Source: Macrostomum lignano (taxonomy: Eukaryota). From it: a DNA stretch of 64,000 nt. The notes beneath the pieces were generated by a model. The model worked only from the letters and a program-made list of their open reading frames with translations. It was not told where the DNA came from and searched no databases. The stretch covers positions 496,001 to 560,000 of the forward strand of contig NIVC01000038.1 of the NCBI GenBank assembly GCA_002269645.1, in the 5' to 3' direction. Numbering within the stretch: the first letter of the stretch is position 1; every line of letters starts with the position of its first letter. Both the position numbers and the translations under genes were made by a program. Shown one piece after another: positions 1-41,299 of the stretch.

Positions 1-490
1 GTCATCGTCCTGCCGGTGACATTGCTACTCTGCCGGGCAGCGCCGTCGGTCATCGTCCTGCCGGTGGCATTGCTACTCTGCCGGGCAGCGCCGTCGGTCA
101 TCGTCCTGCCGGTGGCATTGCTACTCTGCCGGGCAGCGCCGTCGGTCATCGTCCTGCCGGTGACATTGCTACTCTGCCGGGCAGCGCCGTCGGTCATCGT
201 CCTGCCGGTGGCATTGCTACTCTGCCGGGCAGCGCCGTCAGTCATCGTCCTGCCGGTGGCATTGCTACTCTGCCGGGCAGCGCCGTCGGTCATCGTCCTG
301 CCGGTGGCATTGCTACTCTGCCGGGCAGCGCCGTCGGTCATCGTCCTGCCGGTGACATTGCTACTCTGCCAGGCAGCGCCGTCGGTCATCGTCCTGCCGG
401 TGGCATTGCTACTCTGCCGGGCAGCGCCGTCGGTCATCGTCCTGCCGGTGACATTGCTACTCTGCCGGGCAGCGCCGTCGGTCATCGTCC
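1..490. repeat. 48-bp GC-rich tandem minisatellite, about 10 units, continues off the left edge
   Basis: Unit GTCATCGTCCTGCCGGTG(G/A)CATTGCTACTCTGCCGGGCAGCGCCGTCG repeats every 48 nt. One frame is open on each strand. Confidence 0.97.
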
Positions 491-1937
491 AGCCTTTCGA
501 ATTACATATACCGGTCCTCGGCCAGCCGGTGCGGCTGGTCATTCTGCAAACATCAAAGTCGGTAGTACATCACAATCTCAAGTTCTTATTAAAATTTTAA
601 AGTGACCAGGAGAGAAGCGAGAAGTTTCCGAGATGTAATTTGTTTTATGGTTGCAAAAGAATCTGAAAAAATTAAGTGCTTTGAATTCGTACGAGTAGCT
701 CGTATTAAACCACTTGTGAAATATCAAAATAATTGAATTAAATTTATCTCTGCGTAACCATTCGAAAAGGAGCAGGATTTGATTAAATAATATATTGCTA
801 GCAAGCCTATGGCAAAAAATATATATTAGAAGCAAAATCAATTTCTGTCAACGGATGCGCTTATTTTCAAAAGATCAGAGGTGTCCCAGTTTAAATTGCT
901 AGCTTATTTATTCACTGCTTTGAAATTTTACAGTGAAAAAATCAAGGTCTTTTTACCATTTTTACCATCCATTTTCACCATCCATTTTTAATTCAACGGC
1001 ATACGCCTCAAAATAAGCACCCTTTCTTATACTTTCATGTAGCTCGTAATGCTCGATTCAAATTCGTTCTCATGAGCTACAGTGTTCAATTATAATGCAG
1101 GTTTTTTCCTGTACTTTGCTTTTAAAATATATTTACGTGTGCTCTTTGGCGCCTTAAGAATCGGCAGCATTTTAAAAGCGTCGTAAATAAATATTTGTTA
1201 TAGTTGCGTCCAAATCTTTGAAGACGAAGAATGAGCAACATCTAGACATTTTCCAGCTTGTTGGTGATTCGTTAAATGTGAGGTATTGATACTTTTACTT
1301 TCAGTTATTTGAAATATCAGTTATCGTAGATGTTAGTCAGTGCAAATCGAGAGCCAAAAGTTTGCGAGGCGAGACGAAAGTGCCAAGTGCACTGACATAC
1401 GATACGATTTATTATAAGCGAGGTTCCATAGCAGCCCCTCAACCCAAGGGCTAAAACACCAACAGTGTACATTAAAGTCACGATAGAGCAGAGACGTGCA
1501 AAGAGCGTGAGCCCAGACAAAGAGCGCACGCACAGGAATAAAATCACAAACGATACGCGGAGTAAAAGCACACGCCCAACCCCCCACGCAACAGGCCCAA
1601 CATTTGAAAAAGCAACAATAGGCGAAATCCTAGGCCTTTATTATCTGTATAAAGTTTAGCGTGGCTGATGATGCACTATGAGCACTGAAGATTTTGAAGC
1701 TTCCTTGTGTACTTTAAGTAACACCCCGACGGCCAGTAATCCCGCCCGGCTGTCCCCTGTCCTTCCGCCCTCCGCAGGGCCCTACTTCGACTCAACAGTA
1801 GAGACATTAGGGCGGTGCCATGCCCTCTTAGGCTATGGCTGTTTTGCCGCGCATCGTTACCTCCAGGGAAAAAATCCGTAGCGAGAAATTATGCCCATTC
1901 TGCCCCTGCGGTTGAAAATCCGGAGCACTATTACATA

Positions 1938-2180
1938 TACTCAGCAACAGCTAACCCCCCCCCAACTCACGCTGTCACACGGGCACAAAAGTTAAGCAGT
2001 CTTTAATTCCCACCACTGGGTTGAGTTGCGCCACCCCCTCCCCAAATCCCCCATGCCGCATTTTGCGCTCGCGTCTGGCGGCGGCAGCCTTCACACATTT
2101 CTGAATCACCGATGGCATACAAAACTTTTGGGCCGTGTGACAGCGTGAGTTGGGGGGGGGGGTTTAGCTGTTGCTGAGTA
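1938..2180. mobile_element. MITE-like element with about 58-bp terminal inverted repeats
   Basis: 1935-1993 (ATATACTCAGCAACAGCTAA-C9-AACTCACGCTGTCACACGGGCACAAAAGTT) is the near-perfect reverse complement of 2123-2183. TA flanks both ends and there is no coding capacity. Confidence 0.7.
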
Positions 2181-3271
2181 TATATACACACTGCTGAGAA
2201 TTGAAAAGTATATTCCACCTTTAGCTAGTGATCTCAATTTTTCTCTGATCGGAATTGCAAGTAACGCAACTGGCATCACGCGCGGGGAGCGGCATTATTA
2301 TGTATTTAATGTAATACTACTGCATGGTTTCCTTGGTCATAAATGTCTAGGAAACTGTTTTTGGCAAAAATCGGATCTGTCTCACTTCTCTCCTTTCCGC
2401 GGCCCCTTGTTCATCCCCCGGTCGCTTTGTCACCTGTCGCGCTTTGAGGCGCTTATCGAGTTCGAGCCCCGGTTCATTTCTTTTTCCGTTGCCCGACCGC
2501 AGTAGTCTTGCCGCCGTAACATTCGCGGCGACCTCGTTCAGAGTTTGTCAGCAAGCGCGGTTTAGTCAGGAGCGGCCAGGGACTCGCTGAACTGTCAGGC
2601 CGTAAGTGTCCTCTTCATACACTTCATACCGACGTTTAATTGGTATAACTGTCTTGACGTTAATCTTGGTCCATTTCGCGATCGACCGGCCGCTCACCTC
2701 TGTCCAAAGCTTCAATGACCAAACTGTGCATCTTCTTATCTCAAACAGAGTGCAAAATGCTATATCAAACCTGTGTAAATTTCAAGTTAATCGCGAATAC
2801 ACGGGTTAAAGCCTACTATCATTATCAGCCGTTCTATCAGAATAGGATTATCACTCAATCTAGATCTACGAGTATCTGGAATTGTGTTCAACCGTGTTAT
2901 TCATTTACTTGTATACAGTACCTGCGACATTAGAGAAAGCTTGGTAGGACTCGCCGACCGGCCATAGGCAAATAGGACTCAATGGTTTTAAAATCTTCAA
3001 TTGTAGGTTTGTCTAGCCTACAACCTAAACTATCCTCTGTATCGCAATATTTTCAAATAGACCGACGCGAAAGGGGCCATCACAAACTCGAAAAAGAATA
3101 GGGTAAGGGGTCAGGGTTAGAGCCTTACCGGACTGTCGAGGAGGCATACACCTCATTGCATCAGAGCGACTGTTGGTCATGGAGCTGCACAATGCTGGAT
3201 AGCGAACCCTCTCTATCAACCAGGAGCCCGGTGACGATGAAATTGAGTTTAGATTGATGATTTTGTACGTA

Positions 3272-4652
3272 CGAGGGCTGAGTAATAAGTTTCCGGATGT
3301 GCATAGTTGAGAGGCGGCTGACAAAATCTGACACCATATAGGTGTCAAGTACATTTATAAAGTACAATGTTTGTAAAGTTTCAGACAAACTGGTCATATA
3401 TAGCCAGTGCAGCACCCAAACCAAGCTAGAATACCCACCCTTATCTATCGAATTCACAATGGAGCTCAATAGGAGTCATTTTAGAGCAATGATTTATTAC
3501 GATTTTAAAAGTGGTTTGCGGCAGCAAGAAAGTCTTGAGCGATTGCGAGGATTTTTGGGGATGAAGCACCTTCTAGATCCACCGTTTTTGACTAGTTTGC
3601 CGAATTTCGACGTGGCAGGCAGAGTCTGGATGATGAGGAGCGCAGCGGCCAGCCTGTCTCCGCAACGACCGAGGACAGCCTGTCTCCGCAACGACCGAGG
3701 ACAGCCTGTCTCCGCAACGACCGAGGACAGCCTGTCTCCGCAACGACCGAGGATAATGTTGCTGCTGTCCGGGCCATGGTTGAGAATGATGCCGCGAGTG
3801 ACTGTGGCCCAGATAGAGACAGAGGTGGGCATCTCATCAGGATTCATCAGGACGATCCTATATTCACAGCTCAACCTGAGCAAGATTTCTGCACGCTGGG
3901 TGCCTCATCAGCTGGCTCCGGAGCAGGAGGCTCGGGTGACCTGGTGCCGCACCATGCTCGACAGATTCAACGGAGGCAGCTCAAACTTGGTCTGGGATAT
4001 CGTCAGTGGTGACGAGTCCTGGATCTATAGTTTCAACCCGGAGACTAAGCAGCAGTCGGCCCAGCGGACTCCAGTTAGCGGCACCCCACCATCCAAGCTC
4101 GTCGAGATCGCGCAGCGTGGCGAAGCAGATGGTGGCCGTTTTTGTGGCGAAAACCGGTCATCTGGCCACGCGGTTCCACTCGTGCAGCAGCGCACAGTTA
4201 CCAGTGACTGGTACGCCAACGTTTGCCTGCCAGAAGTGCTGAGCGCTCTCTCCAGGCGTCGCCCAAGGACTCGAGCTCGGGGCATCCTTCTCCATCTCAA
4301 CAACGCCCCGGCCCACAAGGCTCGACAGGTGGCGGAGTTCCTAGCCGGAGAGCGCATTCAAGAGCTCGGTCATCCACCCTACAGCCCCGACCTGGCCCCC
4401 TGCGACTTCTTTGTGCTTCCACAAATCAAGTGCAGGCCATGCGTGGAATCCGCTATGGATCACCAAAGCTGCGTGGACTGGAGGCCTTCACCCTGCATGT
4501 GGAGAAGGTGCCTGCTTCAGATTGGTCCAGCTGCTTCAGCAAGTGATTTAGGCGCATGAAAATTTGCATCGAATCTGCTGAAGAGTACTTTGAAAAGATG
4601 TAACTGTTTTTTTCTCTAACTATTTCTGTCTGGGCACATCCGGAAACTTATT
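3272..4652 (+). mobile_element. Mariner (DD34D-type) DNA transposon, non-functional, copy 1
   Basis: Left end TA|CGAGGGCTGAGTAATAAGTTTCCGGATGTGC. The right TIR keeps only its inner 19 bp (4634-4652). Transposase motifs WVPHQL, GDESW and HPPYSPDLAPCDF are present. Confidence 0.93.
3459..4603 (+). pseudogene. Mariner transposase pseudogene (frameshifted)
   Basis: Starts MELNRSHFRAMIYYDF and ends CIESAEEYFEKM*. It has several frameshifts, the second catalytic motif reads LHLNNA (D to N), and a 26-bp unit is amplified 4 times at 3650-3753. Confidence 0.9.
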
Positions 4653-5832
4653 GTTCGGGGGGGGGTTCTAACTTCATTTGCTGAGTGTCCATATCGATTG
4701 ACAAAATGCTGTCAGCGTGGGTGCGTAGCCTGCAGACTTACATGTACACTGCATGTACGCTCCTACATGTATTGCAAGTAAGTCATGTAACATTATCTGC
4801 ATTCAGCCGTATGAAAATTTACACGTACAGCCGATAAGGGTGCGATTAAGGTCCTTGATCATATTGGCAAAAAGGAGCGGACTGTTTCAATGTCGCTTGA
4901 TCAGTACTCGATCGACATGTTACATGTTACTCGGCTCCACTTTATGAGCTTAAATTGACAGACCCTTTCTTTCTCAAAAGTTTGCAAATAAGATGCAAAA
5001 AACCGTGCACTACGCGAAGGCGAAACTTGAAAAATTTCTCTTGATAAAGTAATTCGTATTTATACTCCTAGTAAAACAGCAGAAATTCGTTGCTTAATGT
5101 AATTTAATTAAACATGCATATAGATATTAGTATTTTTTTGTTTAAATTGACACAAAGAAAAACTTACTTGCTCTTTATGTCACGCTTGCTTGTGCGGATC
5201 GTTAAATATTACAAGAACAGATGTGTGGTCTGATCTCATCTTGAAAGTAAAAACTATACAAAAGGAGAACAAGAACAAGTAAAAATATACAAAAATAAAT
5301 TACAGGCATTGAAATGATGCATGAGGCTTTCTCTGCTTTGTCACTTAAAATGAGTAGCACATTACATTGTAGGAAGCGGAAATAAGTCATAATGATGGCA
5401 GAAACTGATATCATTTGTGTACATAGGCCAAGTGTAGCTCGTAAGTAATGCTAAGATGGCTCGCATAAATGCGGGGGCAGATGGTGAAAAAATGCTCAGC
5501 TGATGTGTGGTGAGAGACTGGGACAGTCATTACTATGCATACTTATTTTTTGTACGAAAATGTTTTTAAACCCCGAACCCGGTACCAAAACCCGACGACC
5601 CTGACCCCAATTAATGCAATCAGAACTATCCTTACTTTTCCTGGGGCATCTTAGCATAACTTAGTTAAGTTACTAGACCCACAAATACAATATAAATCGC
5701 AACACTCAGCAAAAAGTTAAGCAATATTGTAGTTCAGTAATTGAACAAACAATTGAATACGACTTTTTTTTACAAATAAGCATGGTTGAAAAGTTATCAA
5801 AATGTACCAAAGTTGCTGATGCACTTTAGTTA

Positions 5833-6462
5833 TCAATCAAGTTCGTCCTCCGATGAAGATGAGCCCGAGCAGTCGGAACTTTTGTTGCTGCAGACCTCTG
5901 TAATGGGCAACCTAAATGAGTTAAATCGAGCTAGAGAATCTCGTTCCGCATTGACCGCTGGACTTCTTCTGTTGAGCGAATAGAAGTGGTGAAAATTTCA
6001 ATAGCCGCAAGCTGCACAGCGAGAGGAAAAGGCCGGATGGTGTGGTTATCAAGACGGGAGTATATCGCGACGAAGCGTTTCAGGCTCCTTCAATGTATAC
6101 TGGCTTCCGCTGGATTCGAGCACTTTCTTCATTTCTGTGGTAGTACATCAACTTTGCGCGTCAGCAGACGACTCTGGTGCGAACCTGGTGGGTAAAATTT
6201 AGCATTTACGCAAATTAATGATACTGATTTGGATAGATGATAAGATGGCAAAAAAGGTTTTTGACACTGAATTTATAAGTACTCGTATATTATTACGCGA
6301 TGTGATTTACCAATGCATCTATTAAGTGCGTTCAAGGCCTGCGCTTCTCGACTGCAAGCCGGCGCATCTTTTGAAGCCAATCGCTGGTTCGCTGAGTAGC
6401 CGCATGTGCATCTTCGCGAAGCCATTGTTCACCTAATTGCAGCAACTGCTGGTAGGTGAAGT
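5833..6462 (-). pseudogene. Partial duplicate of KDZ transposase exons 9-10
   Basis: Matches 10633-11265 with 1-nt deletions. It lies inside duplication copy 1 and is cut by the gap. Confidence 0.8.
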
Positions 6463-6591
6463 CTAAAATTTTGGTAATTAGTAGTAATTTCAGCATCTAC
6501 GCATACGAAATATTGAGTTTATACTCGTTTCATTTATGAAATGAGTACGCGAAGAGATAAACGGTAACATCCAAACGCGCATATGCATCAA

Positions 6592-7378
6592 NNNNNNNNN
6601 NNNNNNNNNNNNNNNNNNNNNNNNNNNNNNNNNNNNNNNNNNNNNNNNNNNNNNNNNNNNNNNNNNNNNNNNNNNNNNNNNNNNNNNNNNNNNNNNNNNN
6701 NNNNNNNNNNNNNNNNNNNNNNNNNNNNNNNNNNNNNNNNNNNNNNNNNNNNNNNNNNNNNNNNNNNNNNNNNNNNNNNNNNNNNNNNNNNNNNNNNNNN
6801 NNNNNNNNNNNNNNNNNNNNNNNNNNNNNNNNNNNNNNNNNNNNNNNNNNNNNNNNNNNNNNNNNNNNNNNNNNNNNNNNNNNNNNNNNNNNNNNNNNNN
6901 NNNNNNNNNNNNNNNNNNNNNNNNNNNNNNNNNNNNNNNNNNNNNNNNNNNNNNNNNNNNNNNNNNNNNNNNNNNNNNNNNNNNNNNNNNNNNNNNNNNN
7001 NNNNNNNNNNNNNNNNNNNNNNNNNNNNNNNNNNNNNNNNNNNNNNNNNNNNNNNNNNNNNNNNNNNNNNNNNNNNNNNNNNNNNNNNNNNNNNNNNNNN
7101 NNNNNNNNNNNNNNNNNNNNNNNNNNNNNNNNNNNNNNNNNNNNNNNNNNNNNNNNNNNNNNNNNNNNNNNNNNNNNNNNNNNNNNNNNNNNNNNNNNNN
7201 NNNNNNNNNNNNNNNNNNNNNNNNNNNNNNNNNNNNNNNNNNNNNNNNNNNNNNNNNNNNNNNNNNNNNNNNNNNNNNNNNNNNNNNNNNNNNNNNNNNN
7301 NNNNNNNNNNNNNNNNNNNNNNNNNNNNNNNNNNNNNNNNNNNNNNNNNNNNNNNNNNNNNNNNNNNNNNNNNNNNNN
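6592..7378. other. Assembly gap (787 N)
   Basis: Run of N. Confidence 1.
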
Positions 7379-10300
7379 AAGCGCGGTTTAGTCAGGAGCG
7401 GCCAGGGACTCGCTGAACTGTCAGGCCGTAAGTGTCCTCTTCATACACTTCATACGACGTTTAATTGGTATAACTGTCTTGACGTTAATCTTGGTCCATT
7501 TCGCGATCGACCGGCCGCTCACCTCTGTCCAAAGCTTCAATGACCAAACTGTGCATCTTCTTATCTCAAACAGAGTGCAAAATGCTATATCAAACCTGTG
7601 TAAATTTCAAGTTAATCGCGAATACACGTTAAAGCCTACTATCATTATCAGCCGTTCTATCAGAATAGGATTATCACTCAATCTAGATCTACGAGTATCT
7701 GGAATTGTGTTCAACCGTGTTATTCATTTACTTGTATACAGTACCTGCGACATTAGAGAAAGCTTGGTAGGACTCGCCGACCGGCCATAGGCAAATAGGA
7801 CTCAATGGTTTTAAAATCTTCAATTGTAGGTTTGTCTAGCCTACAACCTAAACTATCCTCTGTATCGCAATATTTTCAAATAGACCGACGCGAAAGGGGG
7901 CCATCACAAACTCGAAAAAGAATAGGGTAAGGGGTCAGGGTTAGAGCCTTACCGGACTGTCGAGGAGGCATACACCTCATTGCATCAGAGCGACTGTTGG
8001 TCATGGAGCTGCACAATGCTGGATAGCGAACCCTCTCTATCAACCAGGAGCCCGGTGACGATGAAATTGAGTTTAGATTGATGATTTTGTACGTACGAGG
8101 GCTGAGTAATAAGTTTCCGGATGTGCATAGTTGAGAGGCGGCTGACAAAATCTGACACCATATAGGTGTCAAGTACATTTATAAAGTACAATGTTTGTAA
8201 AGTTTCAGACAAACTGGTCATATATAGCCAGTGCAGCACCCAAACCAAGCTAGAATACCCACCCTTATCTATCGAATTCACAATGGAGCTCAATAGGAGT
8301 CATTTTAGAGCAATGATTTATTACGATTTTAAAAGTGGTTTGCGGCAGCAAGAAAGTCTTGAGCGATTGCGAGGATTTTTGGGGATGAAGCACCTTCTAG
8401 ATCCACCGTTTTTGACTAGTTTGCCGAATTTCGACGTGGCAGGCAGAGTCTGGATGATGAGGAGCGCAGCGGCCAGCCTGTCTCCGCAACGACCGAGGAC
8501 AGCCTGTCTCCGCAACGACCGAGGACAGCCTGTCTCCGCAACGACCGAGGATAATGTTGCTGCTGTCCGGGCCATGGTTGAGAATGATGCCCGAGTGACT
8601 GTGGCCCAGATAGAGACAGAGGTGGGCATCTCATCAGGATTCATCAGGACGATCCTATATTCACAGCTCAACCTGAGCAAGATTTCTGCACGCTGGGTGC
8701 CTCATCAGCTGGCTCCGGAGCAGGAGGCTCGGGTGACCTGGTGCCGCACCATGCTCGACAGATTCAACGGAGGCAGCTCAAACTTGGTCTGGGATATCGT
8801 CAGTGGTGACGAGTCCTGGATCTATAGTTTCAACCCGGAGACTAAGCAGCAGTCGGCCCAGCGGACTCCAGTTAGCGGCACCCCACCATCCAAGCTCGTC
8901 GAGATCGCGCAGCGTGGCGAAGCAGATGGTGGCCGTTTTTGTGGCGAAAACCGGTCATCTGGCCACGCGGTTCCACTCGTGCAGCAGCGCACAGTTACCA
9001 GTGACTGGTACGCCAACGTTTGCCTGCCAGAAGTGCTGAGCGCTCTCTCCAGGCGTCGCCCAAGGACTCGAGCTCGGGGCATCCTTCTCCATCTCAACAA
9101 CGCCCCGGCCCACAAGGCTCGACAGGTGGCGGAGTTCCTAGCCGGAGAGCGCATTCAAGAGCTCGGTCATCCACCCTACAGCCCCGACCTGGCCCCTGCG
9201 ACTTCTTTGTGCTTCCACAAATCAAGTGCAGGCCATGCGTGGAATCCGCTATGGATCACCAAAGCTGCGTGGACTGGAGGCCTTCACCCTGCATGTGGAG
9301 AAGGTGCCTGCTTCAGATTGGTCCAGCTGCTTCAGCAAGTGATTTAGGCGCATGAAAATTTGCATCGAATCTGCTGAAGAGTACTTTGAAAAGATGTAAC
9401 TGTTTTTTTCTCTAACTATTTCTGTCTGGGCACATCCGGAAACTTATTGTTCGGGGGGGGGGGTTCTAACTTCATTTGCTGAGTGTCCATATCGATTGAC
9501 AAAATGCTGTCAGCGTGGGTGCGTAGCCTGCAGACTTACATGTACACTGCATGTACGCTCCTACATGTATTGCAAGTAAGTCATGTAACATTATCTGCAT
9601 TCAGCCGTATGAAAATTTACACGTACAGCCGATAAGGGTGCGATTAAGGTCCTTGATCATATTGGCAAAAAGGAGCGGACTGTTTCAATGTCGCTTGATC
9701 AGTACTCGATCGACATGTTACATGTTACTCGGGCTCCACTTTATGAGCTTAAATTGACAGACCCTTTCTTTCTCAAAAGTTTGCAAATAAGATGCAAAAA
9801 ACCGTGCACTACGCGAAGGCGAAACTTGAAATTTTTCTCTTGATAAAGTAATTCGTATTTATACTCCTAGTAAAACAGCAGAAATTCGTTGCTTAATGTA
9901 ATTTAATTAAACATGCATATAGATATTAGTATTTTTTTGTTTAAATTGACACAAAGAAAAACTTACTTGCTCTTTATGTCACGCTTGCTTGTGCGGATCG
10001 TTAAATATTACAAGAACAGATGTGTGGTCTGATCTCATCTTGAAAGTAAAAACTATACAAAAGGAGAACAAGAACAAGTAAAAATATACAAAAATAAATT
10101 ACAGGCATTGAAATGATGCATGAGGCTTTCTCTGCTTTGTCACTTAAAATGAGTAGCACATTACATTGTAGGAAGCGGAAATAAGTCATAATGATGGCAG
10201 AAACTGATATCATTTGTGTACATAGGCCAAGTGTAGCTCGTAAGTAATGCTAAGATGGCTCGCATAAATGCGGGGCAGATGGTGAAAAAATGCTCAGCTG

Positions 10301-11394
10301 ATGTGTGGTGAGAGACTGGGACAGTCATTACTATGCATACTTATTTTTTGTACGAAAATGTTTTTAAACCCCGAACCCGGTACCAAAACCCGACCGACCC
10401 TGACCCCAATTAATGCAATCAGAACTATCCTTACTTTTCCTGGGGCATCTTAGCATAACTTAGTTAAGTTACTAGACCCCACAAATACAATATAAATCGC
10501 AACACTCAGCAAAAAGTTAAGCAATATTGTAGTTCAGTAATTGAACAAACAATTGAATACGACTTTTTTTTACAAATAAGCATGGTTGAAAAGTTATCAA
10601 AATGTACCAAAGTTGCTGATGCACTTTAGTTATCAATCAAGTTCGTCCTCCGATGAAGATGAGCCCGAGCAGTCGGAACTTTTGTTGCTGCAGACCTCTG
10701 TAATGGGCAACCTAAATGAGTTAAATCGAGCTAGAGAATCTCGTTCCGCATTGACCCGCTGGACTTCTTCTGTTGAGCGAATAGAAGTGGTGAAAATTTC
10801 AATAGCCGCAAGCTGCACAGCGAGAGGAAAAGGCCGGATGGTGTGGTTATCAAGACGGGAGTATATCGCCGACGAAGCGTTTTCCAGCTCCTTCAATGTA
10901 TACTGGCTTCCGCTGGATTCGAGCACTTTCTTCATTTCTGTGCGTAGTACATCAACTTTGCGCGTCAGCAGACGACTCTGGTGCGAACCTGGTGGGTAAA
11001 ATTTAGCATTTACGCAAATTAATGATACTGATTTGGATAGATGATAAGATGGCAAAAAAGGTTTTGACACTGAATTTATAAGTACTCGTATATATTACGC
11101 GATGTGATTTACCAATGCATCTATTAAGTGCGTTCAAGGCCTGCCGCTTCTCGACTGCAAGCCGGCGCATCTTTTGAAGCCAATCGCTGGTTCGCTGAGT
11201 AGCCGCATGTGCATCTTCGCGAAGCCATTGTTCACCTAATTGCAGCAACTGCTGGTAGGTGAAGTCTAAAATTTTGGTAATTAGTAGTAATTTCAGCATC
11301 TACGCATACGAAATTTGAGTTTATACTCGTTTCATTTATGAAATGAGTACGCGAAGAGATAAACGGTAACATCCAAACGCTGCATATGCATCAA
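7379..11394. repeat. Copy 2 of the 4-kb direct duplication
   Basis: Starts AAGCGCGGTTTAGTCAGG as at 2553 and ends GCATCAA as at 6591. Confidence 0.95.
8096..9448 (+). mobile_element. Mariner DNA transposon, non-functional, copy 2 (transposase remnant 8283-9399)
   Basis: Same TIRs, TA at 8094-8095 and largely shared frameshifts. The 26-bp unit is present 3 times at 8474-8551. Confidence 0.93.
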
Positions 11395-13961
11395 CTAACC
11401 TGCTTGTGGTACGAGCTGTCGAACTTCACGAACTTTCTGATCAATCAGATACTTTTTCTTTGAAAGAAGCTTATCTCTCGATACCAGCCACGACTCTGTG
11501 GAAAAATTAACATACTCGTCAGAATGAAATAAAAAATTGGACAGCTAGACATTGACACGTCACTTTTGTAAAGCGGCAGACAAAAAATTGTTATTGGCTA
11601 GCTAACCGAAATCCAAACGCAGATGATACATCCCAATGATATGTGCGATGAGTCTGGTGCGCCGGTCGATCCGCATCTCTTTTAATATGCGCCCGTAGGG
11701 ACGTAAAAACGAAAAAATGCGTTCGCAGATCTCGCCGTCGGTGATGCCAGTTCCAGAGGTAACGCGGATTGAGTTGTTCAGCTAAATTGGAAGGAAATTA
11801 TTAAGTAATTATTACTCATTACATTATAGAAATACGACCATACGTTTAACAACTACTTGAGTTTTATGGATTTATTGCGAAATATAAATACTGTACGCAA
11901 TACGCATTAACCTACTATCACCTAGCATCACCTAGCATGAGTGAACCCGTGAGATGATTATTTTAAATAACCAAGAAACACTTCTAGCTGAACTTACACG
12001 GCATTTAGACTCGTGGCCATAAGCGTGAAAAACCGGCACAGCAAGCTTTGATTTCACTTTGCTTCCAATTTTACACGCGACATCATACACAAACGTCACG
12101 GACTCCTCCTGGACGCCAAGACGTTGCACTGCTGCTCGCAGTAGAGTTGTAGGGTAGATGAGACTAAATGTAGAAAAAAAGAAGCTGATTTGCATCAGTA
12201 AAAAGAGCCAAAAATATTCTGTTAGTCATTTCTTACCGTGAAGGCACAATAAATAAAAAAAACACATATAAACACACCGCTCTCCAGGAGTGCGCACATC
12301 AGAGCACGACCAGATAAACCCATGGCGACAGGCAACAATAAAAAAGCCTTTGACGTCCAGCTTTGAGGATGCACGACAAATGTAAGATGTTTCTCCTGCA
12401 GTCCAGTTCGGGCAAGCGCCGCGTGCAGGTGCAATGGCTTGTCCAGACAGATCAACACGCGCAAACGGAAACGGCAGATCTGCGTCCAGAGGGTCCTGGA
12501 AAATCTCCGCTCCTACAGCAGCTCGACGCCTCCACCCCATTAGGGCGTCGCCGTGCAGGATGGGTCCCTAAGTCAAAGACAGTAATATTTCTGATAAATG
12601 AAAAGCTCTTCACATTAAAAATTTCATCACAAAGCATTCATCTTTGTCTCACCAAATCTTTCGATCGGCATAAAGTGCACACAGAAGGAAATTGTGCGAC
12701 TTCAGCTAAAAATTCTCGATACAGGCCGAGGGTGTTGTTTCGTCGAAGGTCATAGTACAGATCCCGCTGCAGTAAATTAATAAAAACATTTTTGAAACAT
12801 CTTACTCTAAACATTTTACTCTAAGAGCCCTTAGAGTAAAAATAAAAGGTTTACGAGTATGTTGGGCTTCAATTATTTTTACTGCACTGTCTCACTCCAC
12901 TGGATTGTAGTAATACATTTGCCATTCGAGGGAGGAATGGTAGAATTGACCTAATGGTTCATCGTGAATTGATAATCTAAAAGTCTAATTTAAAATTGAT
13001 TCCGCTCATTAAAAAGTTAGACTAAAGAAATTACGTTCGGTCGCTGGCCAAAAACGATTCTTCTGTTCTGAAGGATGGTACAAGCCTTCGATAATGATGT
13101 AATTCCGTGTATCATGATGGAATCTAAACTGTTCAACAGTTCGAAAGATGCGAAGACTGAAGTACGGTCGGACAAAGGAAAATAGTTACGAGCAACGAGA
13201 AATTCAGTACAATGACAACTAGCACAAGCATCGATAATGGCCGAATGGTAACCTACAAGGAGAGGTACATTAAGTAGAACAATTAAGGTTAGTAGATTTC
13301 CAAAAGCAAACTTTGCAGGATACAAGATTTGATTAATTAGTTATTTTAGTTCGTGCCACAATAGAAGGTAAAAATAACTTTCCTCCAAAAGCGTCCAAAA
13401 GCGTCACTTTTAATGATGAGCCAGGCGTGCAGCCACACGCAAACTTGATACTTAGGTCAAGAGGCTCTCGATTCTGAAATTTTATGTCTCTTAAAAATGT
13501 GCTCACTCAATCGTAGAGGATTAATGAATTGAATAGAATATTTTTGAATGAATTGAAGATAATTAATTATTTACCTGGTACGCGGAATGTACAAGGCCAA
13601 TATGACGAGTTCGGACACATTCATCACAGAAAAATGCTGAACACTGTGGACAGTATGCAGAGCCAACTTTCAAACATTGGGCACAAACTCCTACCTCTAC
13701 AGCTTTCAAGAAGGCCGAAAGGATCTCAGGCCTGTTTTTAGGACTCACATCTTCCCAGTCACAATGCACTCCGCTAGTACTGGGGCCATCTACATGAGAA
13801 TTTACAACAGTCTCACAATCATCCGGGACACTTGCACCACTACTTTCTAGCACGTGAGCGGTTGTGAGACTTCGTTTTAGGACACTCGTTTTCCCTACAC
13901 CAGACAGCTGCCTTGTGCGCCCGTTGATTCGCACCTTCAGATACTTCTTTGAGCGGCCCAT
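10633..13961 (-). CDS. KDZ (Kyakuja-Dileera-Zisupton) family transposase with B-box-like Cys/His cluster and CxC domain, 10 exons, 681 aa predicted
   Basis: Exons on the minus strand: 13961-13575, 13473-13383, 13252-13035, 12766-12653, 12567-12278, 12163-11998, 11781-11607, 11495-11400, 11265-11113, 10988-10633. Total 2046 nt, phases consistent, no internal stop. Motifs: CAQC-x7-CPQC-x4-CDEC-x4-H-x4-H, CASCHC...NYFP...SFELL, CTLC, HGDALMG, KLDVKGFFIVACRHG, PGERLIYP, VYDVAC, VPVFHAYGH, GTGITDGEICERIFSFL. All splice sites are GT-AG except the exon-2 donor (GA). Confidence 0.88.
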
Positions 13962-14129
13962 GAAAGCAAAATAAATTATATGATAGTTTACCAGCGTAGA
14001 TAAATTAAATCAAATTAGCAAGAAAAAACTATCAGCTAAATACAACTGTTGATAGCAAAGCAGAAATGCTGGAAAAGCTGGATCCAACGACGAATAATAT
14101 TGCAGGCTGGATTCCTAAGACAATTGGGA

Positions 14130-17100
14130 AAGAAGAGTGGCTAGACTCACCAGAGGATTGGGAAAGGAAAGTGGCTGGATTCCCCAGAGGATTAGGAAAG
14201 GGGAGTGGCTGGATTCCCCAGAGGATTAGGAAAGGGGCGTGGCTGGATTCCCCAGAGGATTTGTAAAGGGGAGTGGCTGGATTCCCTAGAGGATTTGGAT
14301 AAGAAAGCAGCTAAATTCCCCAGAGGATTGGGAAAGAGAAGTGGCTAGATTCCCCAGAGGATTAGGAAAGGAGAGTGGCTGGATTCCCTAGAGGATTGGG
14401 AAAGGGGAGTGGCTGGATTCCCCAGAGGATTGGGAAAGGGGAGTGGCTGGATTCCCTAGAGGATTTGGATAAGAAAGCAGCTAAATTCCCCAGAGGATTG
14501 GGAAAGAGAAGTGGCTAGATTCCCCAGAGGATTAGGAAAGGAGAGTGGCTGGATTCCCTAGAGGATTGGGAAAGGGGAGTGGCTGGATTCCCCAGAGGAT
14601 TGGGAAAGGGGAGTGGCTGGATTCCCCAGAGGATTAGGAAAGGGGAGTGGCTAGATTCCCCAGAGGATTAGGAAAGGGGAGTGGCTGGATTCCCCAGAGG
14701 ATTAGGAATGGGGAGTGGCTGGATTCCCCAGAGGATTAGGAAAGGGGAGTGGCTGGATTCCCCAGAGGATTGGGAAAAGAGTGGCTGGATTCCCCAGAGG
14801 ATTGGGAATGGGGAGTGGCTGGATTCCCCAGAGGATTAGGAAAGGGGAGTGGCTGGATTCCCCAAAGGATTAGAAAAGGGAGTGGCTGGATTCCCCAAAG
14901 GATTAGGAAAGGGGAGTGGCTGGATTCCCCAGAGGATTAGGAAAGGGGAGTGGCTGGATTCCCCAGAGGATTAGGAAAGGGGCGTGGCTGGATTCCCCAG
15001 AGGATTTGTAAAGGGGAGTGGCTGGATTCCCTAGAGGATTTGGATAAGAAAGCAGCTAAATTCCCCAGAGGATTGGGAAAGAGAAGTGGCTAGATTCCCC
15101 AGAGGATTAGGAAAGGAGAGTGGCTGGATTCCCTAGAGGATTGGGAAAGGGGAGTGGCTGGATTCCCCAGAGGATTGGGAAAGGGGAGTGGCTGGATTCC
15201 CTAGAGGATTTGGATAAGAAAGCAGCTAAATTCCCCAGAGGATTGGGAAAGAGAAGTGGCTAGATTCCCCAGAGGATTAGGAAAGGAGAGTGGCTGGATT
15301 CCCTAGAGGATTGGGAAAGAGTGGCTGGATTCCCCAGAGGATTGGGAATGGGGAGTGGCTGGATTCCCCAGAGGATTAGGAAAGGGGAGTGGCTGGATTC
15401 CCCAAAGGATTAGAAAAGGGGAGTGGCTGGATTCCCCAAAGGATTAGGAAAGGGGAGTGGCTGGATTCCCCAGAGGATTAGGAAAGGGGAGTGGCTGGAT
15501 TCCCCAGAGGATTGGGAATGGGGAGTGGCTGGATTCCCTAAAAGATTTGTAAAGGGAGTGGCTAGATTCCCTAGAGGATTTGGACAAGAAAGCAGCTAAA
15601 TTCCCTAGAGTATTGGGAAGGGGAGTGGCTAGATTCCCCAAAGGATTAGGAAAGGGGATTGGCTAGATTCCGCAGAGGGTTTGTAAAGAGGAGGGGCTAT
15701 ATTCCCTAGAGGATTAGGAAAGAGGAGTGGCTAGATTCTCTAGAGGATTTGGATAAAAAAGCAGCTAAATTTCCTAGAGGATTGGGAAAATGGAGTGGCT
15801 GGATTTTCTAGAGGATTGGGAAAATGGAGTGGCTGGATTCCCTAAAGGATTAGGAAAGGGGTGGCTGGATTCCCCAGAGGATTAGGAAAGGGGAGTGGCT
15901 GGATTCCCCAGAGGATTAGGAAAGGGGAGTGGCTGGATTCCCCAGAGGATTAGGAAAGGGGAGTCTCTGGATTCCCCAGAGGATTAGGAAAGTTGAGTGG
16001 CTGGATTCCCCAGAGGATTAGGAAAGGGGAGTGGCTGGATTCCCCAGAGGATTGGGAAAAGAGTGGCTGGATTCCCCAGAGGATTGGGAAAGGGTCGTGG
16101 CTTGATTCCCCAGAGGATTGGGAAAGGGTCGTGGCTTGATTCCCCAGAGGATTGGGAAAGGGGAGTGGCTGGATTCCCTAGAGGATTGGGAAAGGGGAGT
16201 GGCTGGATTCCCCAGAGGATTAGGAAAGGTGAGTGGCTGGATTCCCCAGAGGATTAGGAAAGGTGAGTGGCTGGATTCCCCAGAGGATTAGGAAAGGGGA
16301 GTGGCTGGATTCCCTAAAAGATTTGTAAAGGGGAGTGGCTAGATTCTCTTGAGGATTTGGATAAAAAAGCAGCTAAATTTCCTAGAGGATTGGGAAAATG
16401 GAGTGGCTGGATTTTCTAGAGGATTGGGAAAGGGGAGTGGCTGGATTGGATTCCCCAGAGGATTGGGAATGGGGAGTGGCTGGATTGGATTCCCCAGAGG
16501 ATTAGGAAAGGGGAGTGGCTGGATTCCCCAGAGGATTAGGAAAGGGGAGTCTCTGGATTCCCCAGAGGATTAGGAAAGGGGAGTCTCTAGATTCCCCAGA
16601 GGATTAGGAAAGGTGAGTGGCTGGATTCCCCAGAGGATTAGGAAAGGGGAGTGGCTGGATTCCCCAAAGGATTAGGAAAGGTGAGTGGCTAGATTCCCCA
16701 GAGGATTAGGAAAGGGGAGTGGCTGGATTCCCCAGAGGATTAGGAAAGGGGAGTGGCTAGATTCCCCAGAGGATTGGGAATGGGGAGTGGCTGGATTCCC
16801 TAAAAGATTTGTAAAGGGGAGTGGCTAGATTCCCTAGAGGATTTGGATAAGAAAGCAGCTAAATTCCCTAGAGTATTGGGAAGGGGAGTGGCTAGATTCC
16901 CCAAAGGATTAGGAAAGGGGATTGGCTAGATTCCGCAGAGGGTTTGTAAAGAGGAGGGGCTATATTCCCTAGAGGATTAGGAAAGAGGAGTGGCTAGATT
17001 CTCTAGAGGATTTGGATAAAAAAGCAGCTAAATTTCCTAGAGGATTGGGAAAATGGAGTGGCTGGATTTTCTAGAGGATTGGGAAAGAGAAGTGGCTGGA

Positions 17101-17400
17101 TTCCCTAAAGGATTTGGATAAGAAAGCAGCTAGATTATTCAGAGGATTGGGAAAGGGGAGTGCCTGGATTCCTTAGAAGATCTGGATAAGAAAGCAGCTG
17201 GATTCCCTAGAGGATTGAGAAGGGAGGGTGGCTGAATTCCCCAGAAGATTGGGAATTGGGAGTGGCTAGATGCCCTAGAAGATTTAGATAAGAAAGCAGC
17301 TAAATTCCTAGAGGATTGAGATAGGAAAGTGGCTAAATTTCTTAGATGATTAAGATAAGAGAGAGGATAGATTACTTAAAGGATTAGGGTTATAGAGCTA
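14130..17400 (+). repeat. 34-bp satellite array with higher-order blocks, degenerating rightwards
   Basis: Unit GTGGCTGGATTCCCCAGAGGATT(A/G)GGAAAGGGGA. Block about 14200-14560 recurs at about 14960-15320, and about 15510-15830 recurs at about 16770-17090. Confidence 0.96.
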
Positions 17401-18190
17401 CTAGATTCTTTAAAGGATTATGATTAAGATAAGGGAAAGCTATATTGTTAGACAAATTAAGGCTAGGCTTAAGGATAAAGTAGCTTTTAAAGATTAATTT
17501 AAACTAAAAATTCAAATAAGGAATTTAGCTAGAAAAGAAACTAAATTGAAAAAAATATATAAAGGCTAAAAAATTATATCTATTCTAAAAATACTAACTT
17601 ACTAAGCTAAAGAAAAGCTAAATTTCTAAAAAGATCAGGATTAGAAAAATGTTGGATATAAATTTGATATAAATTTGCAAGCTCTAAGTATAACCCTAGC
17701 TAGTATAGGGCCCAACTATTTTATAATGATATATTTTAATAACATATAATTATAGTGGAGGCTTAGCATTGATTAAAAATAAATGAACAAAGATAGGTCT
17801 TTATAAATTAAAAAGATCTATATACAGTATACCCTACATAATAGGCCTGTATAGATGGTTAGGCCTTCTTTTATTAAATGTTTAAAGGTATTATAAATAG
17901 ACAGTTCCCTGATAACAGTTCTCATTCTGATTTAAATACTCTACACTTTGCAATGCAACTAGTAATATTGCAGTATCAATGAAACTTCTTTCCACTGTTT
18001 GAACTAATCCATCGATCTATATTAAAAGCAGCAAAATAACGATTTTAATTATGCGCCGAAATTAGTTCATTGGATTTATACACAAGCCCGCTTTTAATTG
18101 GGTAGAAGACATGTCACCGTGGCATATGACATGGCATTTACCCGATCTTATGCACTCGTTTTTGTACCTTTAGTCCGGGTTTTTATCGAT

Positions 18191-18218
18191 GCCACTCGGG
18201 TGGCGCCACCCGAGTGGC
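18191..18218. other. Perfect 28-bp GC-rich palindrome
   Basis: GCCACTCGGGTGGC-GCCACCCGAGTGGC in AT-rich surroundings. Confidence 0.9.
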
Positions 18219-20924
18219 TTTATACTTTATACTATACTAATACCTATATACTTTTTTATTACCTACGGGTTAAACTTTTTTGCTTTAAATCACCAACTAC
18301 ATACATCAATTGCACACAATACTTGTCTTTTTTAATTCCTTACTTTTTCTTCGTTTGTCGTTAAAGCTCGTTCAAAGTTTCGTAAATAACATTTAGGCGC
18401 TCTTTTAAATAATTATAGTATTACAAATCTCCCGGTTAAAGTCAAAACTGGGGAGTCAGAAAATGTAGAAAAAAATTTGTTGTTTCAATTGGTAATTTTT
18501 TATACAATTTTTTATATTTCTGTTAAGTGGTCTCAAAAAAACATTTTTAAAGCACAAAATACACCTCTTAATAAATTTTCTACCCATTTGTTAATCTTTA
18601 CTTTTACGGAACTGTACGGACGCAGAATCAGAAACTAAATAAAGTATTATAAAAATAAATGTTTTATACAAACCCGTAAAAGTAGTTTTTATCTGAAAAA
18701 AATTAGGTAAATATTGCAATAGATATTTTTAAAATAAATATTAGGCTGGATTTTGTTAAACTGTTTACTTTGTTTACGTCGCGCCTGTTTGTGTTCTGAA
18801 ATACTCTCGTTAATTTAGTTATCAGTTTCATGTTAATAAGTACTTTATTTATTATTGATGTTTGGCCTGGTTCTTTTTACGGATGTGAAATATCAGCAAA
18901 CTTTTTTGGATTGAATTAAATATGAGATTTAGATATTGATTACTGACTTCTGTATTTCAAGCATTGCAAACGTCTAGCATCAATTTTCTGCTTATCTAAT
19001 TCATGAACAATAATCGATCGAGGATTCTAGATATATGCTTTATTTTATAAGCCACGGCTTATGAATAGGCAAATGACTCATGAGACTGAGGTTTAAATAA
19101 TTTTACTGAATAGAATGACAAATAAAGGTGTCTATCAAGTTTTTTTTATAAAATAGCTTTATCCACCCACGCTCTTGTTTAACTATATTTTTGTTCTGAG
19201 GCATAATTTGTAGTCTAGTTCAGATTGCTATTTATATTTAACTGTCCGTGTCTTAGGCCTATTTTATTTTTTGCTAATGACGTAGTAATAAAAAATATAA
19301 TGTAAATATAAATTTTTGTATAGCTTTACAGCTTAGAATTACTTCGAAACTGATATATGCTTTTTTACAAAAGCCATTAGGCCTTAGCTAAGTGATAATC
19401 TACCTTATGATTACTGATAATGATACTGTTTATTGTAGCCATCACTATGCACTTTTAAGTATATATATAATTTAAATTGCTAAATAATTAACAAGTAGCA
19501 AGTAAAACAGGTAATAACTTTTTTTAAACTTTAACTTTATAGTTTCATATAATTTGCAATGTAAAAAGCTATATAAAATGTGACTTGCACTATTCTTTAA
19601 AATGTATAATTGCAATATGTTTTCATTTGCATTATTTGTTTTTTTTATTTCATTTAAAACTCACATTATGAGCTTTAAAAACTTAGAACATGTTAAAAGT
19701 TAAAAATGCAAAACCTGATATATTTGCTTTTTAAAAAATTAGAAAATAGCATTATTTTATTATACATTTTATTGTTTACAAACTGGCTTTAAATGCCTAG
19801 CAGGAGTGTTTCCTTTTATACTATTGTATATTTAATATACCAATAAATTCTTAACTTGCTTTAGTAGAAGTTTTTTAGACTTAAATGTAAGTAAAATATG
19901 TTAAATGTTTTTCACTTTAATTTCAGCCATGCCAGGACTTCTTTGGGAGATCTTCTCAGCTGCATTTTATGATATGCCTTTCATTCTGAGCTCTAAACCT
20001 GAGGCCTTACTTAAACAATGAAACTGGTGGACTTGCTGTATGTTACCTTTACATTTGGTTGAGTGAGTCTAGTGCTTTCTCCATGAACCAACCTGATCTG
20101 TCTGAGCAACCTGTTGCAATGTTGGCGACTCCTGCACCTAGCAGGCCACTTCTGCCCACAACTGGCTCAGGTGCTGCGCTGCTACTTTTGGATTCTGGCA
20201 CCCAAGATTCTGGTGGCTATGTGGCCTACATTTTCTCTCAGACCACAAGACACACCTTTTTAGAACCTTATGTTTTATAGTGTGTTTTATTGTATGGGCC
20301 TAGTGGCTATACCAAAAATCTTGTTTTGCATTTAAGTTAATAAAACTTCTGCTTCAGGAATTTATTACTTGTGCCTAAAAATTCTAAAACCTATTTCTGT
20401 TGCCTGTTCATCTTTTTCACTAAATCAAGAGGCATTAAGAGCTTCATTTAGAGCTCTGTGAGATTCACATTTGTATTGAAACTGTTTGGATAGGATCATA
20501 ACCATGCCCCCCACCCAGATATCTTTTTTACCCTTCTTGAGGTAGCCATATTGATTTTCTGTTCTGGTCTGTGCAGACTGCTCTATACGTCCATGACCAT
20601 AGATTAAAATATTTGAGCTGATGCTGCTTTATTAATAAAACTTTTTATTATCCGATCAATGTGTTTGGGAAGTCGTGTTTTAAATCGTAGGCTCGTTTAC
20701 TCGTATATTTGTTGAAATTAAGCAAGAGCTCGTCAATCGTTTCGCGCTTGTTCCTGCAGTCTATCAATTGTGGGTCTGTAAGCCAAGCATATACCCATAA
20801 ACTAATACGTGGCTGCTGGCAGCCACACATCACAGGTACATAGCTGGTTGAGCTTAAAAAGCACTTATTAGTTATATAAGGAGTATGCTATAGTCAAAAT
20901 AAAAGCATCCTAGCTTTCAAAGCT

Positions 20925-22844: not shown

Positions 22845-24095
22845 GCTATACTAGCTAGGCTTATAGCTTGCAAATTTATATCAAAATTTATATTTAATAT
22901 ATGCTAACTAACCTATTATTATTTAGCATATCTAAGAATATATTTATCTTTTTTCTAATCCTAATCTTTTCAGAAATCCAGCTTTTCCTTAGCCTTAGTC
23001 TTTTAGAATAGATACAATTTTTGACCTTAATATATTTTTCAATTTAGTTTCTTTTCTAGCTATAATAATCCTTATTTGAATCTTGTTTAGTTTAAATAAT
23101 CCTTCTTAGAAGCTATTTTATCCTCAAGCCTAGCCTTAATTTGTCTAACAATGTAGCTTTCCCTTGTCTAAATCATGGCCACCTAATCCTTTAAGGAATC
23201 TATCTTTTCTCTTATCTTAATCCTCTAAGAAATCCAGCCACTTCTCTATCTCAATCCTCTAGGAAATTTGGTTGACGGTCATTTCGTCTGCCACCTTTTC
23301 GTCTGCCGCCTTTTCGTCTGCCAATATACGATATAGTCGTTTCGTCTGCCAATATATATAATATATAAATCGGAATAACTAATTATGTCATCAAGCTTCG
23401 CATGGAAGTGTAATGTAAATGTCTTATTAATTCTAATTTATTATAATGCTAGGATTTTCTGCAAGTTCCGGAGCTAATATGTTGCATAATATATAAATAC
23501 ACAAAGCCAGAAGCAAATATCTCCAAGTTCCAACCGTTTAGTTTCCTTCCAACTTTCTTTTTTTTCGTGTATGTAAACTCATATGCAATTTATTCACGAA
23601 TAGGGGGCCTACAGGTAGCTTAAATGCACAAAGTGTAAAATGTAAGGAGCAATCGAAATTGTAGGCACAGAAAATGTAAACTCATGCAATTTATTCACGA
23701 ATACAAGTAGCTTAAATGCACAAAGTGTTAAAAAAGGTAAGTTAGGTTTCGTAGAAAATGAAGAAAAACAAAATGTATCAATATAAATAAGAAAACATAC
23801 TTAAAACTTGCTTATACTAATTTATTTTAATTCCCTACATAAAAATTACGAAATAAGTGAACCAAAATAAACATAAATAAAAAAGTCGTTTCGTCTGCTA
23901 AAATTCTTTGGCAGACGAAAAGGCGGCAGATGAAATGACCGCGGACCGGAAATTTAGCTGCTTTCTTATCCAAATCCTTTAGGGTATCTAGCCACTTCCT
24001 ATTCCCAATCCTCTAGAGAATTCAGCCACTCTCCTTTCCCAATCCTCTGGGGAATCTAGCCTTTTCCTTCCCAATCCTTTGGGGAATCTAGCCCA
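22845..24095 (-). repeat. Inverted copy of the 34-bp-satellite element and its unique 3' tail
   Basis: The reverse complement of 22845-23270 aligns with about 17330-17710, ending CTAGCTAGTATAG. 34-bp units resume after the MITE at 23948. Confidence 0.88.
23270..23947. mobile_element. MITE with about 40-bp TIRs and an 8-bp target-site duplication
   Basis: Left TIR GGTTGACGGTCATTTCGTCTGCCACCTTTTCGTCTGCC versus right (reverse complement) GGTCCGCGGTCATTTCATCTGCCGCCTTTTCGTCTGCC. GGAAATTT lies at both 23262-23269 and 23948-23955. Confidence 0.9.
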
Positions 24096-25254: not shown

Positions 25255-25755
25255 TTGATTCTCCTAAAGGATTACAATAGGAGAGTGGCTAGATTCCCTA
25301 GAGGATTTGGATAAAAAAGCAAAATTCCCTGAAAGATTGGAAAGGGGAAGTGACTGGATTCCCCAGAGGATTTGGAAAAGAAAGCAGCTAAATTCCCCAG
25401 AGGATTTGGAAAAGTGGAGTGGCTAGATTCCCTAGAGGATTCAGAAAGGGGAGGGGCTGGATTCCCCAGAGAAATTCTTAAGAGGGGTGGCTAGATTCTC
25501 TAAAGGATTGGGAAAGGGAAGTGGCCAAATTTTCCAGAGAATTAGGAAAAGGGAGTGGCTGGATTCCCTAGAGGAATTAGATAAGAAGGTAGCTAGATTG
25601 CCCAAAGGATTAGAAAAGAGAAATGCAGTGGCTGAATTCTCCAGAGGATTAGGAATAGATAGTGGCTAGATTCCCAAGAGCATTGAGAAAGAAGAATGGC
25701 TAGATTTTTCAAAGGATTGGGAAAGGGAAGTGGCTAGATTTCCCAAAGATTTCCA
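25255..25755 (+). repeat. Third, degenerate array of the 34-bp satellite
   Basis: GTGGCTAGATTCCCTAGAGGATT-type units. Confidence 0.85.

Positions 25756-29010: not shown

Positions 29011-29078
<68 letters not shown>

Positions 29079-29939: not shown

Positions 29940-30021
<82 letters not shown>

Positions 30022-41238: not shown

Positions 41239-41299
<61 letters not shown>

Follow-up and report, generated by a model that had tools for sequence, protein, structure and literature searches.

The stretch of DNA analysed here (the window, 64,000 nt) belongs to Macrostomum lignano (assembly GCA_002269645.1, contig NIVC01000038.1). Its left part is occupied by a DNA transposon of the Kyakuja-Dileera-Zisupton (KDZ) superfamily, which carries a multi-exon transposase gene on the minus strand and, upstream of this gene, a long array of a 34-bp satellite. 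A nested mariner-like element and the end of a second element-borne gene are found in the same part, and three host genes are situated to the right of the element (Table 1). Comparison with further copies revealed that the transposase gene sits inside a complete DNA transposon that has terminal inverted repeats (TIRs) as well as target site duplications (TSDs).

Joining of ten exons resulted in a coding sequence (CDS) of 2046 nt for a protein of 681 amino acids (aa), with consistent phases and zero internal stops, so that the ten-exon structure proposed in an earlier note, made from the letters alone, was reproduced. Residues 4-681 are matched with 100% identity, including the join of exons 2 and 3 (GG/YH), by PAA86676.1 (BOX15_Mlig009249g1, 678 aa), a 5'-partial model of a third locus from which the start codon (MGR) is absent. 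Eight of the nine introns are bounded by GT and AG, and the acceptors have good polypyrimidine/AG signals. An exception is given by intron 2, which runs from GA to AG with the donor context GGAG/GAAAGT (slashes denote junctions) and was not mentioned in the earlier note. The gene had been called essentially intact there, a description that has to be qualified with regard to this 5' splice site.

In the sister subfamily described below, the same donor position reads GGAG/GTGAGA, and an alignment of 17 homologous sequences has no gap over the junction of exons 2 and 3. Animals splice GA-AG introns that have AG before and A after the donor (PMC7072748). A canonical donor that keeps the frame is otherwise found only 69 nt upstream in exon 2 (GT) and would yield a 658-aa product. 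This model was rejected, since 23 residues including one invariant cysteine would be lost, and the homologues as well as PAA86676.1 continue across the GA junction. Due to the fact that the GenBank models of this assembly are based on assemblies by StringTie/TACO and on de novo transcripts mapped with BLAT, in which open reading frames (ORFs) were called by TransDecoder (PMC5730564), all junctions including that of the GA-AG intron are indirectly supported by transcripts.

Two further models, PAA87933.1 and PAA92829.1 (BOX15_Mlig007828g1 and g2, 476 aa), correspond to residues 206-681 with 100% identity and begin at an internal Met in exon 3. These models, PAA86676.1 and the paralogues Mlig010793 and Mlig028888 are labelled as hypothetical protein only, with no transposon structure, ends or TSDs attached. 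The transposase gene is real and already public as a hypothetical protein, and is thus not new; the statement that it is hidden is true solely of the bacterial-style ORF track. In a collection of 15 billion proteins, no exact match was present for the 681-aa, the 658-aa, or the intron-retention product.

The assignment to the KDZ transposases, as put forward earlier, was confirmed by a match of the Pfam family PF18758 to aa 320-471 (103.6 bits, cut-off 26.6, E=1.6e-29), and the same family matches 17 out of 17 aligned relatives. These 17 members originate from flatworm, priapulid, echinoderms, and amphioxus, and not one of the 31 columns that are invariant in their alignment is altered in the window protein, whose catalytic and zinc-ligand residues are preserved. 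W69, C104, C107, H120, and H125 belong to an N-terminal finger, C144, C169, and C172 to a CxC cluster, and C262 and C265 to a zinc ribbon with the motif CTLC. Further invariant columns include D277, C350, H352, G365, E366, Y393, D394, C397, H413, G416, H417, C421, R428, D437, G438, E439, E442, R443, and K456, which comprise the motifs HGDAL (D277), CRHG (C350, H352), YDVAC (D394), FHAYGH (H413, H417), and DGEICER (D437, E439, E442). The protein is laid out as a B-box/ZZ-like finger, the CxC cluster, the CxxC ribbon, a core with D277, D394, and E439/E442, and a long helical tail.

For the B-box and CxC domains named in the earlier note, the invariant Cys/His columns and the matches of relatives are in agreement with the claim, whereas the protein itself has no significant match to a hidden Markov model (HMM) of either kind. 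Its zf-B_box score of 18.1 bits is below the gathering cut-off of 24.1, and the CxC families, SWIM, SAP, and Ulp1 gave no Pfam match at E<=1 in the 681-aa protein. A family profile compared to PDB weakly matched the B-box1 of MID1 (2ffw, E=0.0016) and ZZ domains (dystrobrevin ZZ), and the zinc finger was the sole part matched in this search. With its conserved Cys/His pattern, the N-terminal cluster is most aptly termed a cross-brace finger that resembles B-box or ZZ domains. Since the HMM scores of the window protein give no CxC match, its CxC assignment rests on homology: CxC1 is matched by 13 and CxC2 by 10 of the 17 alignment members, and a relative from Priapulus is above the cut-off (CxC1 49 bits, CxC2 46 bits) in a region that aligns to aa 138-215 of the window protein.

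AlphaFold (AF2) models reached a mean predicted local distance difference test score (pLDDT) of 73 and a predicted template modelling score (pTM) of 0.68 for the full-length protein, and a pLDDT of 85.8 and a pTM of 0.88 for the core. In the core model the elements follow each other in the order b1-b2-b3-a1-b4-a2-b5-a, with D277 on b1, D394 just past b4, and E439/E442 opening a helix. This strand and helix order is as in RNase H, and the model is compatible with a putative RNase-H-like fold of the core.

When 1.84 billion cluster representatives were searched exhaustively with HMMER, 633 relatives were obtained at E<=0.001, 84 of them at E<=1e-10. All of the nearest full-length relatives come from paralogue families of M. 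lignano, in some of which the gene indices extend to g29; they are followed by proteins of Priapulus, sea urchins, sea cucumber, starfish, amphioxus, and a fish, and then of basidiomycete fungi. In UniProt, relatives are named "B box-type" or "CxC2 domain-containing". When the alignment was used for a second protein search, which was word-indexed, nothing beyond the same five proteins was retrieved.

The boundaries of the element were obtained from a comparison of the window copy (L002) with L001 and L004, which constitute subfamily A, and with L005, L006/L003, and L008, which constitute subfamily B. The three subfamily-A copies share about 99.7% identity over more than 10 kb and end at one shared base (window position 18202). 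Each of them starts with CACCCGAGTGGCATCGATAAAAACCCGG in gene orientation, and the sequences beyond this point differ entirely. Except for L003 and L006, which represent one insertion site seen twice, no mutual similarity was observed between the 4-kb flanks of any sites. Both ends are present in the complete copy of L004 (5748-21316, 15,569 bp), where the element begins with 5'-CACCCGAGTGGCATCGAT... and terminates with ...ATCGATGCCACTCGGGTG-3', i.e., CAC..GTG, which gives the CA..TG termini CACCCGAG...CTCGGGTG. The 18-nt terminus occurs once in the window even if three mismatches are allowed, at a chance expectation of 0.01.

In L004, the left TIR arm (1-3282) and the reverse complement of the right arm (1-3252) are 93.6% identical, and an inverted satellite array is situated at the opposite element end in L001 as well as in L004. 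A search for inverted repeats near the gene (9300-18500) failed to give a pair of TIRs, as the second arm lies beyond the window, and the ends emerged only via the comparison of copies. The complete copies are bordered by the TSDs CAATAAA (L004, a perfect direct repeat), GAGAGGC (L005), and AATAATCG (L006/L003), which amounts to a length of 7 bp in two out of three cases. Copy number, TIRs, and TSDs had been listed as a check in the earlier note, and TIRs of 3.3 kb, TSDs of 7-8 bp, and at least three near-identical copies were thus obtained.

A second terminus, CACCCGAGTGGC, is located head-to-head at 18203-18218, four bases beyond the element end. Fragments with 78-85% similarity to the subterminal region, together with degenerate 34-bp arrays, occur at 22846-25750. 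It seems that the insertion of the young copy took place within an older relative, 3 bp from the end of the latter.

Subfamily B (Mlig010793/Mlig028888) was found at the three further sites L005, L006/L003, and L008. Its protein is about 58% identical to that of subfamily A overall, with 74% in the core and 48-49% elsewhere; a first search had given 65% over the C-terminal 473-aa model. Both subfamilies have the same exon/intron layout and the identical 18-nt terminus, and the TIRs of subfamily B measure about 2.1-2.2 kb. In subfamily B (L005/L006, approximately 9990-10001), the annotated CDS starts right after the splice acceptor ttgttccag/GGTCGT and lacks a genomic ATG, whereas a genomic ATG is present at the corresponding position of subfamily A (window 13959-13961). 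Due to the absence of a genomic ATG and the fact that the spliced leader of M. lignano ends in ATG (PMC8629364), the start codon of subfamily B is probably donated by trans-splicing. In case of L003, a 10-bp deletion (ATCGATCATT) at approximately 9915 in exon 3 shifts the frame, which is why its GenBank model begins at an internal Met.

A second element-borne gene, ORF2, is encoded on the strand opposite to the transposase, in the part of the element that separates the transposase gene from the far TIR. Only its 3' repeat-bearing part reaches into the window; it is found at L001 17713-20282 and L005 17543-20366, and L004 is an internal-deletion derivative without it. Two ORF2 exons, one of which opens with MGAK, show 40-51% aa identity between the subfamilies, whereas the internal tandem repeat differs (a 48-bp unit in subfamily A, a PNPPTV-type repeat in subfamily B). 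No Pfam match was obtained for ORF2.

The gene span of 3329 bp, introns and GA donor included, is 100% identical in all three subfamily-A loci, and the terminal 773 bp are free of differences as well. Over the 6.7 kb from the gene to the mariner-like element, two substitutions were counted besides indels typical of long-read errors. Because near-identical copies occupy unrelated sites, their sequences point to transposition in the very recent past, by which present activity is not proved. Of the earlier alternatives, young and possibly active or domesticated, the former is favoured by the TIRs, TSDs, and near-identical copies at three unrelated sites, and domestication is unsupported. Retention of CpG/CpA dinucleotides, brought forward at that time as evidence, does not distinguish the gene: the observed/expected CpG ratio amounts to 1.07 for the gene as against 0.76 for the mariner ORF and 0.96-1.0 for adjoining 4-kb bins. 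The low ratio of the satellite (0.04) is explained by its repeat unit, which has no CG.

Since copies of subfamily A have zero differences, the ratio of nonsynonymous to synonymous divergence (dN/dS) is accessible between the subfamilies only. The proportion of nonsynonymous differences (pN) is 0.17 for the core and reaches 0.35-0.37 in the other parts, exon 1 among them, at a proportion of synonymous differences (pS) of about 0.73. As dS is saturated, dN far below dS is all that can be said. Nevertheless, this holds for every protein part, exon 1 included, and therefore indicates purifying selection on the whole protein.

Considering these observations, the region very probably encodes the transposase of an autonomous KDZ DNA transposon with very recent mobility, the ends and TSDs of which look closest to those of Kyakuja. 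The spliced mRNA, with intron 2 removed by use of the GA donor, would be translated into the transposase, whose zinc modules would bind the element ends and possibly the subterminal repeats. A DDE centre would cut both ends and integrate the element with a 7-bp stagger in a cut-and-paste manner.

Several observations weigh against this interpretation. The far end of the window copy is located to the left of position 1, and thus its second end and TSD are outside the window. The TSD of L006 is 8 bp long, or 7 bp plus one base, and TIRs are reported to be absent from the fungal Kyakuja families, in contrast to the 3.3-kb satellite-bearing TIRs found here. When the full-length and core models were compared to PDB with Foldseek, no RNase-H-like match reached significance (best E=0.078); the non-significant list holds RNase-H-like folds, namely ASKHA ATPases, HIV reverse transcriptase, Hermes, Tn5, and Argonaute. 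Furthermore, the GA donor of intron 2 is present in all three subfamily-A copies examined and may lower the yield of full-length protein, and the window's own locus and its L001 twin are annotated with the 476-aa product only, which leaves room for a reduced full-length output.

The two latter points also nourish the rival explanation of a crippled copy, according to which the GA donor stops production of the full-length transposase in subfamily A and the copies are mobilised by another source, e.g., the sister subfamily. The corresponding donor of subfamily B is GT, the 476-aa product lacks the zinc modules, and the identical 18-nt termini of both subfamilies make cross-mobilisation conceivable. 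However, the transcript-derived GenBank CDS joins exons 2 and 3 exactly at the GA site, the donor AG/GAAAGT otherwise fits the consensus, GA-AG introns in such a context are spliced in animals, and the N-terminal part keeps every invariant residue, for which reasons a crippled copy is considered improbable.

It is very unlikely that no transposition took place and the near-identical copies merely reflect a redundant Mlig_3_7 assembly or a recent duplication of segments in the neopolyploid DV1 line, even though this assembly holds 180 Mb of non-repetitive blocks with at least 95% identity (PMC5730564). L003 and L006 are indeed one site, and the window itself contains an assembly duplicate beside a gap, but in every copy homology ends at the identical base, which is the inverted-repeat end, the flanks are unrelated over 4 kb, and the complete copies possess perfect direct duplications of 7-8 bp. 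Scarcely credible is a domesticated host gene, i.e., a KDZ transposase co-opted and kept intact by host-level selection as is said of vertebrate HMGXB3: the intact ORF, dN far below dS in comparison to the paralogue, transcription and splicing, and the gene-like multi-exon structure would suit it, but the gene lies between intact 3.3-kb TIRs with TSDs, at least three virtually identical copies occupy unrelated sites, no orthologue above approximately 30% identity was found outside M. lignano, and purifying selection is equally predicted for an active transposase lineage.

Returning to the recently mobile KDZ transposon, it is tempting to speculate that it is a currently active, autonomous element of a laboratory flatworm amenable to transgenesis, and that its satellite TIRs possibly act as a transposase-binding array and its GA-AG intron possibly throttles the output of full-length transposase. 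This extension is regarded as rather doubtful. If true, the element would follow fish Zisupton as one of the few KDZ elements of animals whose ends and TSDs are fully defined, and its kilobase-sized TIRs built of satellite, its conserved second gene, and its GA-AG intron would be unusual.

The mariner-like passenger occurs in all three subfamily-A copies within the shared block of 99.7% identity. In addition, the window contains a duplicate block whose differences from its original are nearly all 1-bp indels and of which L001 and L004 have a single copy. It gives rise to a spurious, error-ridden copy of exons 9-10 (approximately 5836-6463) and to a second mariner ORF (3342-4559). We are probably dealing with an assembly artefact here, apparently an unpolished contig overlap at a scaffold gap, that does not belong to the biological element.

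In a distant, multi-copy KDZ family of M. lignano (Mlig004599, gene indices up to g29), represented by L007 on NIVC01001944.1, a gene encoding a 486-aa SET-domain protein (PF00856; 14863-16865) is located 2 kb downstream of the transposase gene. This pairing probably recurs at three other places, because their neighbours are mostly the same proteins. By analogy to the TET/JBP genes of fungal KDZ elements, the SET gene may constitute a chromatin-modifier cargo. No TIRs were detected within 10 kb to either side of L007.

To the right of the element, approximately 2.5 kb of GA-rich low-complexity repeat (28163-30690) account for long spurious ORFs on the minus strand. Telomere-like arrays are situated at 51702-51763 ((CTAACC)n, left) and 57365-57475 ((TTAGGG)n, right), and a 23-bp satellite occurs between them in both orientations (52637-55755 and 56214-56601). 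The region 51702-57475 may constitute an interstitial telomeric site or a further element with repeat ends. The ankyrin-repeat protein at the right margin comprises 1155 aa, has a membrane-spanning C-terminal part, and is encoded by an intron-less gene.

Table 1. Location of the KDZ transposon, its transposase gene, and further features in the window.
Feature	Position	Strand	Remarks
KDZ transposon subfamily A, in-window part	1..18202	-	5' terminus (gene orientation) at 18202
Transposase gene	10633..13961	-	10 exons, 681 aa, stop codon 10633-10635
Transposase exons 1-5	13961-13575, 13473-13383, 13252-13035, 12766-12653, 12567-12278	-	
Transposase exons 6-10	12163-11998, 11781-11607, 11495-11400, 11265-11113, 10988-10633	-	
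Non-canonical GA 5' splice site, intron 2	13381..13382	-	same in L001 and L004
N-terminal Cys/His cluster	13587..13694	-	aa 90-125; C93, C104, C107, C112, H120, H125
CxC-type cysteine cluster	13215..13431	-	aa 144-172; C144, C169, C172; spans intron 2
KDZ catalytic core	11608..12679	-	aa 262-480; CTLC zinc ribbon 12679-12668
Core residues D277; CRH; D394	12549-12547; 12330-12322; 12084-12082	-	
Core residues H413/H417/C421; E439; E442	12027-12001; 11733-11731; 11724-11722	-	
18-nt terminus CACCCGAGTGGCATCGAT	18185..18202	-	common to both subfamilies
TIR arm, ~3.28 kb	14921..18202	.	inner boundary approximate; includes 773-bp unique terminal segment 17430-18202 and 34-bp satellite
Subterminal 34-bp satellite	14105..17429	.	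~94 copies, unit GGCTGGATTCCCCAGAGGATTAGGAAAGGGGAGT; ends 143 bp upstream of ATG
Expected TSD of window copy, GCGCCAC	18203..18209	.	predicted from TSDs of complete copies
ORF2 3' end (48-bp tandem-repeat exon)	1..605	+	only this repeat-bearing part in window
Nested mariner-like element	8108..9448	+	frameshifted transposase ORF 8166-9347, DDE_3 25 bits, 19-nt perfect inverted ends
Duplicate block	2553..7378	.	2553-6591 = 98.7% copy of 7379-11394, abuts N gap 6592-7378 (787 bp)
Nup84/Nup107-type nucleoporin	36932-42774		host gene right of element
GH63 mannosyl-oligosaccharide glucosidase	45311-49990		host gene right of element
Ankyrin-repeat protein	60410-63877		host gene right of element

Few DNA transposons are as poorly characterised as KDZ elements, and their genes in animals are mostly unexplained "hypothetical" multi-exon genes. 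Before fungal Kyakuja and Dileera (2025), well-defined ends were known only for Zisupton (PMC12730594). The locus supplies a complete animal KDZ element for which the exact termini, the TIRs, the length of the TSD, the cargo, and several near-identical copies are at hand. It is a new, well-delimited, very young representative of a known superfamily. By this means a set of M. lignano "hypothetical proteins" becomes an annotated, probably live transposon family, and part of the 34-bp satellite is explained as TIR material. Moreover, the element offers a testable native cut-and-paste system for this model flatworm, in which an attempt based on the Minos transposon gave no transposase-mediated integration (PMC5730564). 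Kyakuja or Zisupton elements are not connected with Macrostomum in any paper of the literature searched, and there the structure of the transposon appears to be undescribed. The general picture of transposon biology is unchanged by these results.

In comparison to known systems, the element resembles CACTA/EnSpm transposons in its way of working and not by membership. Both have CAC..GTG termini, inverted subterminal repeat arrays at both ends, and a second gene besides the multi-exon transposase gene. CACTA elements, however, make 3-bp TSDs and depend on a transposase family different from that of the KDZ element. For the EnSpm-related CMCT clade as a whole, TSDs of 2-5 bp are given (PMC12730594). 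Pfam scans of the 681-aa protein and the 17 aligned relatives revealed no CACTA/EnSpm family (Transposase_21/23/24).

Zisupton of fish (Bohne et al. 2012) and the Zisupton-like elements of Pristionchus pacificus belong to the same KDZ family and likewise encompass gene-like, multi-exon metazoan transposases and recent bursts. Extra modules of Zisupton are SWIM and an Ulp1-type protease. The M. lignano protein has no SWIM or Ulp1 match and is short (681 aa), as opposed to the up to approximately 1400 aa of Zisupton proteins (PMC9297572). The P. pacificus elements are multi-exon and their TSDs could not be found (PMC9297572), whereas those of the M. lignano element are clear. Both Zisupton and Dileera (Zisupton-1_PGr) generate TSDs of 8 bp (PMC12730594), in contrast to 7 bp in two out of three complete copies of the element presented here. 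Together with the CA..TG ends, these differences bear out the earlier classification as non-Zisupton.

With Kyakuja of the Agaricomycotina (Iyer et al. 2014), the element shares a KDZ-type transposase (PF18758) that follows a cysteine cluster, assigned here to the CxC type by homology, the 7-bp TSD, and the 5'-CA..TG-3' termini. The fungal families, described without TIRs (Kyakuja-1_LB and -2_LB; PMC12730594), often carry a TET/JBP dioxygenase, whereas the M. lignano element is devoid of a TET/JBP gene and adds a B-box/ZZ-like finger, a 10-exon gene, and an animal host. Since fungal Kyakuja is said to have no TIRs, the term Kyakuja-like is used instead of proven membership. Matched by its TSD and ends rather than by a tree, the M. 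lignano element looks closest to Kyakuja.

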